A stretch of 63,401 nucleotides of DNA, counting the filler, from Reticulomyxa filosa (lineage: Eukaryota > Protista > Foraminifera): assembly GCA_000512085.1 (NCBI GenBank). It is 24 parts of 24 records of this genome, joined end to end, with 100 filler letters (N's around TTAATTAATTAA, not from the genome) between each part and the next. Parts side by side here need not be neighbours in the genome. Positions count along the whole stretch, not along the records: positions 1 to 4,771 come from ASPP01029188.1; 23 more parts are not named here. One strand, given 5' to 3'. Shown here piece by piece: positions 2,155 through 2,911 of this stretch (the stretch's first letter is position 1; each line of letters begins with the position of its first letter). The notes under the pieces are model-generated. The model was not told the origin of the DNA. It searched no databases and worked only from the letters and a program-made list of their open reading frames with translations. A program made the position numbers and the translations under genes.

Positions 2155-2585
2155 CTCCTTGTTTTTCATGTTATCTTTTTAGCTGTACTGAAATTTCAAC
2201 ACTTTTTTGAAAAATAAAACACAATTCGAAATTATTTTTGAATGTGAAAAAGAAAAGAAAATTCCACTTGTTTTTTTGACTGATCAGTAATGAACGAATG
2301 GAGCAATCAGCATATTTTTTGTAATAAATTATTCTGGAGCAACAACTTCTAAACAAGACATGTACCAAAGAGAAACAACTTCAAAGTTTAGCAATGATTT
2401 GGGCAATTCCTCAATAACAACTTTGAAAAATGTAGAAAGAAAGAAGGAAGAAAAGAGCAGAGACAACAACGAGTATGACAATCACTTAACGAGCCTGCAA
2501 ACAAAAAAAAATGCGAATGAGAATATCTGTTTTTGTTCAAACAGCAACAAGGGGGTGCATCAACAAATCAAGCGATTACTTTGTT

Positions 2586-2594
2586 AAAAAAAAA
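2586..2594 (-). terminator. Putative Pol III oligo-T terminator (T9) of the tRNA-like element
   Basis: A9 on the + strand, about 10 nt downstream of the discriminator base at 2605. A-runs are common in this genome. Confidence 0.45.
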
Positions 2595-2604
2595 TTACTT
2601 CAAT

Positions 2605-2911
2605 TAACAGCGGTGGGAGTCGGACCCACGTCTCCGCTTAAAATAAGAAGTGCTGCACAAAAACCGCACATGAAAGATATTTCTATCTCCCATGTGCAAT
2701 TAATGTGTGCTCACATTGAGGGCAAGTGCATACAAGTCCCTGCGACTTAAACTTGTACACACATGACGCACCCCCACAACATGCGCCAACCTATCAGCTC
2801 TTTTGAAGCTGAGCCACTCCCCCGAGACAACAGGTAACCCCGAAGCCCTGAGAGTGGATGGTCCTAGCACTCATTACTTTTTTGCGGGCTCTACCGTTGA
2901 GCTACGCCGCC
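2605..2911 (-). ncRNA. tRNA-like element: acceptor, D and T arms enclosing a ~246-nt structured insert in place of the anticodon loop
   Basis: 5' GGCGGCG-TA-GCTC AACGGTA GAGC-CCGC ... GCGG-AGAC-GTGGG TCCGACT CCCAC-CGCTGTT-A 3'. The 7-bp acceptor stem, 4-bp D stem and 5-bp T stem all pair. A box and a near-consensus B box are present. Confidence 0.7.

Follow-up and report, generated by a model that had tools for sequence, protein, structure and literature searches.

The question raised by this locus is what kind of RNA would be made from a gene that has the two ends of a tRNA and, where the anticodon loop should be, a large folded domain. The gene is located at positions 2605–2911 on the minus strand of the window, i.e., the whole stretch of 63,401 nucleotides of joined Reticulomyxa filosa sequence that was analysed. 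As the contig that carries it (C29188) is AT-rich and has an ankyrin-repeat frame at 78–926 of the window, the element can be assigned to host DNA and not to one of the bacterial contigs that the assembly also contains. The reading that we prefer, with modest confidence, is that the element belongs to a multigene family of non-coding RNAs in which the tRNA body is an expression and stability cassette for a conserved folded domain of 250 nt.

Architecture and fold of the element

The window copy is a 307-nt tRNA body in which a 246-nt folded domain stands in for the anticodon loop. An earlier note, made from the sequence, had described this layout of tRNA ends, and the acceptor stem, the D arm, the T arm, a variable loop of 4 nt and a T9 run were all located on the minus strand. 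The features are the following:

2605–2911, minus: whole element, a tRNA-framed RNA gene of subfamily A, lineage A1
2912–2947, minus: AT-rich upstream stretch, with TTTAAA near −13
2905–2911, minus: acceptor stem, 5' strand, pairing with 2606–2612
2888–2904, minus: U8-A9 and D arm (D arm 2888–2902), with G18-G19 present and the A box at 2894–2904
2884–2887, minus: anticodon-stem stub of 4 bp (partner 2634–2637), leading to a small symmetric internal loop, with no anticodon loop
2866–2879, minus: P1, long closing helix, 5' strand, pairing with 2641–2654
2788–2863, minus: three-way junction of P2 (2860–2863/2788–2791), the long hairpin P3 (2814–2857) and the short hairpin P4 (2794–2812)
2716–2779, minus: conserved core, with P5 (2773–2779/2716–2722), a UGCG bulge (2767–2770) and the hairpin P6 (2723–2765)
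2704–2715, minus: P7, small 4-bp hairpin, among the stretches with the highest sequence conservation between subfamilies A and B
2662–2701, minus: P8, 18-bp hairpin with a GNRA tetraloop (GAAA or GCAA in A copies)
2654–2663, minus: U5 run and UGCA motif, directly before the 3' strand of P1
2613–2629, minus: T arm, with the B box at 2616–2626
2605–2612, minus: acceptor stem, 3' strand, and discriminator (A at 2605); no CCA in the gene
2586–2594, minus: T9 run, likely Pol III terminator, 10 nt past the discriminator

In the window copy the acceptor stem has 7 bp, including three G-U pairs, the D stem 4 bp and the T stem 5 bp. The T loop keeps C56 and A58, and position T55 is C, as had been read from the B box before. 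This C is common to lineages A1 and A2, while the position is canonical in lineage A3, in subfamily B and in a third subfamily; the change counts against the preferred reading, although A1 and A2 both stayed under structural selection. The AT-rich upstream stretch is also found at copy L003, whose more distant flank is unrelated, and it is possible that this stretch with its TTTAAA is a TATA-like Pol III element. Internal T runs are present on the minus strand at 2659–2663 (T5) and 2640–2643 (T4).

The minus strand folds with −133.1 kcal/mol (z −6.7), which none of 100 shuffles equalled, and the plus strand with −94.6 kcal/mol (z −4.2). Four of the five insert helices proposed in the earlier note, 2666–2697, 2726–2762, 2794–2812 and 2814–2857, are kept across copies. 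The fifth, a 7-bp helix at 2765–2787, had to be given up, being private to the window copy with a different 5' strand in the others; the fold shared in this region is P5 together with a likely 4-bp pseudoknot, modelled between the UGCG bulge and a CGCA (2741–2744) in the loop of P6. The potential for this pseudoknot exists in subfamilies A and B, without covariation. An extension of the P8 hairpin to 2655–2710 had also been suggested; P8 is shared, but the extension competes with P7, which can form in both subfamilies. It was on the other hand correct that the anticodon-stem stub leads into a long helix closing the insert, P1; 7 of its 13 pairs are compensatory, and its sequence turns over among copies while the pairing stays. 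The U5 run is invariant in subfamily A and missing from B, and the UGCA motif is common to A, B and the third subfamily.

The element is not a normal intron-containing tRNA gene, which agrees with the earlier view. Removal of an intron at 37/38 leaves no U33 and gives triplets that differ among copies (AAG in the window copy), the triplets read from the 3' side of the loop differ likewise, and no conserved anticodon was found in any splice register across copies. An intron-containing tRNA requires an anticodon stem of 5 bp and a 7-nt loop, whereas the stem has only 3–4 bp in most copies and positions 30–32 and 38–40 form a symmetric internal loop of 2–3 nt that runs into P1. The splice-site bulge motif of tRNA introns has been described (PMC4090602; PMC4536317), and the 3-nt splice bulge, the bulge-helix-bulge and a conserved anticodon-intron pair at 37/38 are absent from every copy examined. 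Canonical eukaryotic tRNA introns are 6–133 nt long (PMC4090602), and the insert is thus about twice the length of the longest. ARAGORN gave no match on the element when run without introns; the intron-tRNA calls obtained with long introns and a lowered threshold were rejected as forced, with inconsistent anticodons.

Copies in the genome and selection on RNA structure

A DNA search of the assembly (101,867,045 bases in 50,809 contigs) found 10 close loci with 69–100% identity, here called subfamily A, which fall into the lineages A1 (L001–L003), A2 (L004, L005, L007, L009, and L010), and A3 (L006 and L008). L010 has lost the middle of the insert and kept the cloverleaf and the closing helix, and L005 has lost the 3' half of the tRNA. 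With a D-arm pattern a second subfamily, B (L041, L043), was found, which has 24 matches in the genome, the same tRNA frame and an insert colinear with that of A, helix for helix; the B insert by itself is homologous to the A insert (insert-only nhmmer E 4e-4). The genome was also searched with two models, one of the core with 11 pairs and one of the 5' part with sequence only, which overlap by about 30 nt. The core model matched 53 places, 31 of them new with respect to subfamilies A and B. Among the 31, C28178 is a decayed A2 duplicate; the 5' model matches in register at 20; and at 10 the UGCA leads in register to an anticodon stub, a variable loop and a canonical T arm, where 0.0004 would be expected by chance. 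These in-register matches define a third subfamily and bring the family to about 60 loci (10 close A copies, 24 B matches, and about 30 others), the third subfamily and most B copies being known from coordinates and short pattern matches. No homologue outside the Reticulomyxa genome was found when viral, metagenome and prokaryotic contigs were scanned with the exact 18-nt most-conserved motif, a scan that is insensitive to diverged relatives and covers collections with little foraminiferan DNA. Its 1 viral, 78 metagenome and 49 prokaryotic matches are chance only, as none extends past the seed or has a tRNA frame.

Selection was assessed with a hand-set structure of 95 pairs aligned over eight A copies. 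The window copy forms 93 of these pairs and is counted among the structurally intact copies (L001, L002, L004, and L006). Over the eight copies 93.4% of cells are paired, a level that 0/500 shuffles reach and that compares with 40–49% in slid controls. Both sides have changed in 25 of the 95 pairs, in the tRNA arms as well as in the insert: 3/7 in the acceptor stem, 2/4 in the D stem, 1 in the anticodon stub, 2/5 in the T stem, the seven of P1, and in the inner helices 3/7 in P4, 1 in P5, 4 in P6, and 2 in P8. P2, P3, P7 and the pseudoknot are conserved with zero compensatory pairs and are therefore less secure. G-U cells outnumber A-C cells by 98 to 12 when read on the minus strand, and the RNA strand is therefore the minus strand. 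Selection on RNA structure in this orientation had been suspected in the earlier note from mismatches of the G-U type, and both the mismatches and the selection are upheld; homologues devoid of compensatory change, which the note had named as speaking against it, were not encountered. Changed pairs are still paired between lineage consensuses in 25/27, 23/27, and 27/32 cases, with 38% expected for random single changes; this covariation draws on three lineages, the A2 consensus leaning on L004 and that of A3 on L006. In the decayed copies L003, L005, L007, and L008 pairing is broken by 43–77% of private changes. Intact copies from the three lineages fold with z −6.7, −6.1, and −10.8. The folds of the four full B copies analysed, all decayed, are not more stable than those of shuffles (z −0.6 to −1.4), and the subfamily B consensus (z −1.7) refolds into the same layout as A. 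As the 3' strands of the D stem and of the acceptor stem fall outside the promoter boxes, the compensation points to a constraint on RNA and not on DNA.

Recent copies share long flanks, which reach the kilobase scale (L001 with L002; L004 with L007, L009, L010, and C28178; L006 with L008; L041 with L043), and they lose the element through ragged deletions. No precise empty site was found among the paralogous flank pairs of this one genome, from a single isolate, nor was an intact or empty tRNA allele, which the earlier note had considered a further point against its reading. In three of the four pairs the element is more similar than its two flanks (96 vs. 90 and 77%; 92 vs. 83 and 90%; 90 vs. 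76 and 75%), and in the L006/L008 pair it is not better conserved than the flanks. Between lineages homology ends at or close to the element boundaries, and 25–50 nt of upstream sequence are shared even by copies with otherwise unrelated flanks. Of 12 copies, none has an encoded CCA or a target-site duplication that exceeds chance. The shared upstream DNA and terminators and the lack of retroposition marks argue against retroposition and for a gene that was duplicated as DNA, promoter and terminator included. The best reading is a family with birth-and-death evolution that spread within segmental duplications and in which many copies are decaying.

Two observations concern the surroundings of the window copy. 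Directly after the terminator L002 has about 525 nt (L002:731–1257) that are missing in the window (2580–2587), and since L003 shares 30 nt of this stretch it is probable that DNA immediately downstream of the window copy was deleted. On the plus strand a 436-aa frame at 844–2154, with no Pfam match, overlaps the ankyrin frame; the two are probably one spliced gene, and the 3' part of the 436-aa frame has about 20 diverged relatives in the genome.

Proposed expression and rival explanations

We infer that the element would be transcribed by Pol III and trimmed at its ends. Most of 12 copies have a T run 4–13 nt past the discriminator, and the host tRNA-Arg, tRNA-Sec, and MRP genes end in T runs likewise. 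The A3 copies (L006:1502–1808 and L008:988–1278) have an A run and no near terminator after the acceptor stem, and within the closing helix P1 another A run pairs with a T15 or T11 run; L006 is nevertheless the best-folding copy and has a canonical B box. It is conceivable that Pol III may stop at these internal T runs, ahead of the T arm. The B box of yeast U6 lies downstream of the transcript, and an early stop in A3 would give the same arrangement.

In the mechanism that we propose for the preferred reading, TFIIIC would bind the A and B boxes, Pol III would transcribe about 320 nt and stop in the T run, and PRORP and RNase Z would trim the ends at the tRNA elbow and the acceptor stem, with CCA addition to follow. 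PRORP was found in the genome and a nuclear RNase P RNA was not found in the genome search, hence the trimming enzyme would be a protein-only RNase P. The product would be an unspliced RNA of about 310 nt, unable to decode mRNA. Its working part would be the P5/P6 pseudoknot, P7 and the UGCA core, and the weakest step of the proposal is that this part may be a protein-binding platform in a ribonucleoprotein, suggested because the core sequence is kept across subfamilies while the outer hairpins change freely. The family would evolve through DNA duplication and decay, with few intact genes per lineage. The genome has nine copies of U6 and, besides one intact true tRNA-Arg gene, several decayed ones, so that such copy numbers are usual for Pol III genes here.

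Some features of the host genome were noted alongside. The RNase MRP RNA gene (L059; C20817:2572–2860, 62 bits) has a TATA-like upstream sequence and a T10 terminator, and Reticulomyxa seems to pair MRP RNA with a protein-only RNase P. The canonical tRNA matches inspected are nearly all bacterial, with encoded CCA and Ile-Ala pairs (L011–L040, L061–L079); clean host tRNAs among them are limited to Arg-CCG (L063) and Sec (L094), the assembly gave no match to an initiator tRNA-Met pattern, and most host tRNA genes seem to be missing from, or unassembled in, the accessible assembly.

Three options had been offered in the earlier note, a processed tRNA mimic, which fits best, the precursor of a circular intron, which is weakened by the lack of a 3-nt bulge and of an anticodon-intron pair, and a tRNA-derived repeat, which is half right in that there is a family of about 60 loci but without retroposition marks. 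The repeat can be put as a SINE-like, non-autonomous mobile element, in which the tRNA halves are the promoter, the insert is recognised by the reverse transcriptase of a host retroelement and structure is selected only in source copies. We regard this as unlikely, although it would account for dispersed loci in three subfamilies, most of them decayed, and for homology between lineages that stops at or near the element ends; internal A and B boxes derived from a tRNA are present, reverse transcriptases are abundant in the genome (at least 151 matches), and a selfish element, too, needs its RNA fold during spread. An A run at the 3' end, as might be left of a retroposed tail, occurs among the 12 copies only in A3. 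Copies without target-site duplication or CCA that travel with genomic T-run terminators and 25–50 nt of untranscribed upstream DNA are however not what such an element would leave behind, nor are kilobase flanks shared by recent copies and ragged deletions in place of a precise empty site, and the B box lies at the 3' end and not in a 5' head. More doubtful still is the circular intron, where the tRNA splicing endonuclease would cut the insert out and RtcB would join its ends, so that the true product would be a circle of about 230 nt and the tRNA halves would be discarded. The genome encodes RtcB and a domain of the splicing endonuclease, the insert occupies the region where canonical introns lie, and P1 holds its ends together as in the structured Drosophila intron giving tric31905 (PMC4536317); against this, the symmetric internal loop replaces a 3-nt bulge or bulge-helix-bulge, the short anticodon stem comes without a conserved anticodon-intron pair, and the insert exceeds canonical introns in length as described above.

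The remaining explanations have little probability. That the element is a strongly diverged housekeeping RNA otherwise unaccounted for in the genome, most plausibly telomerase RNA, is very improbable: TERT is encoded, its RNA was not identified in the genome, and the element is closed by a helix and may contain a pseudoknot, but no single-stranded stretch resembling a telomerase template, with 1.5 repeat copies, is common to the subfamilies, CCCUCAA, which is conserved, lies in a helix and covaries in A3, and sixty diverged copies are ill-suited to a telomere template. No telomere repeat emerged from the genome for comparison with the insert. As to other housekeeping roles, an MRP RNA and SRP candidates (C1831 and C9208, below cut-off) are located elsewhere, no TROVE protein was found, and PRORP makes an RNase P RNA unnecessary. 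We give equally little weight to a feature of the DNA itself, namely a TFIIIC site whose inverted repeats are kept alike by template switching, and no RNA. The promoter boxes are indeed conserved and the A and T runs in P1 of A3 match each other, but the G-U excess on one strand and compensation in pairs 250–300 nt apart, within a multi-branched fold, speak for RNA. Least credible of all is that these are the working tRNA genes of the host and that their giant introns are spliced out at non-canonical positions. The accessible assembly does contain few canonical host tRNA genes (47 of the 49 tRNA-match contigs inspected are bacterial-looking or without a call) and the initiator tRNA was not found; yet no splice register yields a conserved anticodon, the window copy giving AAG without U33, and the scarcity can be explained by assembly loss, ordinary tRNA genes being clustered in another foraminiferan (PMC3079666).

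Known RNA classes and other tRNA-ended genes

No Rfam family matched at E ≤ 10 in overlap with the element, nor any A or B copy (E up to 10 and 5), and the confident hit to a known family that the earlier note had allowed for did not appear. Its statement that motifs of group I introns (P/Q/R/S), SRP and RNase P/MRP are lacking was confirmed by inspection and Rfam. tmRNA was rejected for want of the G3-U70 mark, the D loop without a stem, a tag reading frame and a tmRNA match in Rfam or ARAGORN; RNase P/MRP RNA, as the CR-I and CR-V motifs (P4 pseudoknot) are absent and MRP RNA is a separate gene at C20817 without tRNA ends; SRP RNA, as the symmetric loop of helix 8 and the helix 6/8 tetraloops are absent; and a group I intron, as the set of P3/P7 core with P, Q, R, and S elements, U-G splice site and terminal G was not recovered and no terminal G is conserved. 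UGCG and CGCA resemble group I P4 strands, but covariation places them in the bulge and the loop of another fold. Inspection also led to the rejection of hammerhead, HDV-like, twister, pistol, and hatchet cores, of C/D and H/ACA boxes, of a conserved reading frame, of an Sm-site snRNA (B copies lack the U5 run) and of a UUCG tetraloop in P3 (located in a stem in A2 and A3). Y RNA and vault RNA identities are not supported, with no TROVE (Ro60, TEP1) match in this incomplete assembly and no vault protein match in a search of it that had no positive control.

One of the closest known systems is tmRNA (RF00023), which within 300–400 nt has tRNA-like ends, a long helix where the anticodon arm would be and a large inner domain with pseudoknots. 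The element differs from it in its full D stem, in C3-G70 in A instead of the G3-U70 alanine mark, in having no encoded CCA and no conserved reading frame, and in being nuclear and multicopy. In the engineered tRNA scaffold of Ponchon and Dardel a cargo RNA is reportedly placed on a shortened anticodon stem and trimmed and protected by tRNA enzymes; the element is alike in build, but occurs naturally in a genome, where it is under selection. tRNA genes whose anticodon region holds a structured insert with covariation are also known, namely in tricRNA genes (Drosophila CR31905; PMC4536317) and in the archaeal tRNA-Trp intron with its C/D RNA (PMC4090602), both of which keep a working anticodon and a splice motif, whereas the element keeps neither and has its 246-nt insert. 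tRNA-derived SINEs share a tRNA-derived Pol III promoter and many dispersed, decayed copies in subfamilies, but here the body lies between two tRNA halves and not behind a tRNA head, tail and target-site duplication are lacking, and copies carry upstream DNA and terminators. In vault RNA the A box lies near the 5' end and the B box near the 3' end, with paired ends and a variable middle. This layout is shared, although vault RNA is without a cloverleaf and far shorter, and no TROVE (TEP1) or major vault protein match was found in the host assembly. The ends of the bacterial Y RNA YrlA are located in its Ro-binding stem. YrlA and the mascRNA/MEN-beta mimics keep the tRNA elbow without decoding and are substrates of tRNA-processing enzymes (PMC10424219), as would be expected of the element, but YrlA works with Ro60, a TROVE protein of which no counterpart was found in the host assembly, and mascRNA is short and is released from a long Pol II transcript.

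Neither Rfam nor the literature searched, which did not include the genome paper, contained a class of nuclear RNAs in which a complete tRNA body carries a large conserved domain in place of the anticodon loop, and the family, as judged from one genome, fits none of the known classes tested. Until now such a design has been described chiefly in laboratory constructs and in bacterial tmRNA. If expressed, the family would be its natural counterpart and a new structured RNA class in a lineage, the foraminifera, whose non-coding RNAs are almost unstudied; even a selfish element would be a Pol III element of undescribed build. It provides a defined target, a 310-nt RNA with predicted ends and a predicted pseudoknot core, for which intact and dead copies are built-in controls. 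It is tempting to speculate, as a tentative and rather doubtful possibility, that in foraminifera the tRNA body serves generally as a cassette in which non-coding RNAs are encoded, that the family of about 60 loci is a new class of expressed ribonucleoprotein or catalytic RNA and that other tRNA-ended genes are further classes.

When the genome was searched for host T arms with a T run behind them, few ordinary tRNA genes were returned, but several families with tRNA ends around unrelated inserts of 50–350 nt, which suggests from sequence that the design of a tRNA with an insert recurs in this genome. Perfect or near-perfect acceptor stems are found in tRNA bodies with a 186-nt insert (L051:1269–1524, minus) and with an insert of about 48 nt (L109:588–710, plus). 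The former has a mutated T loop and a 3-nt variable loop, and with a 37/38 intron it would give Gly-ACC, a rare isoacceptor, with an unusually long intron. Another family, unrelated to family A, has a perfect 7-bp acceptor stem and a T arm around an AT-rich insert of about 105 nt with C-box- and D-box-like words (L114:131–309, plus, and two inverted copies in L095). At loci of the type of L081 and L102 (minus), of which there are at least four (C3587, C19035, C27569, and C46469), the acceptor stem and T arm surround about 150 nt with no evident D arm. Further tRNA-ended families (L120, L121, L110; L111, L113; L093; L080; L108, L116, L122) include one whose long insert is made up of imperfect tandem units, one that is AT-rich and several short odd cloverleaves.
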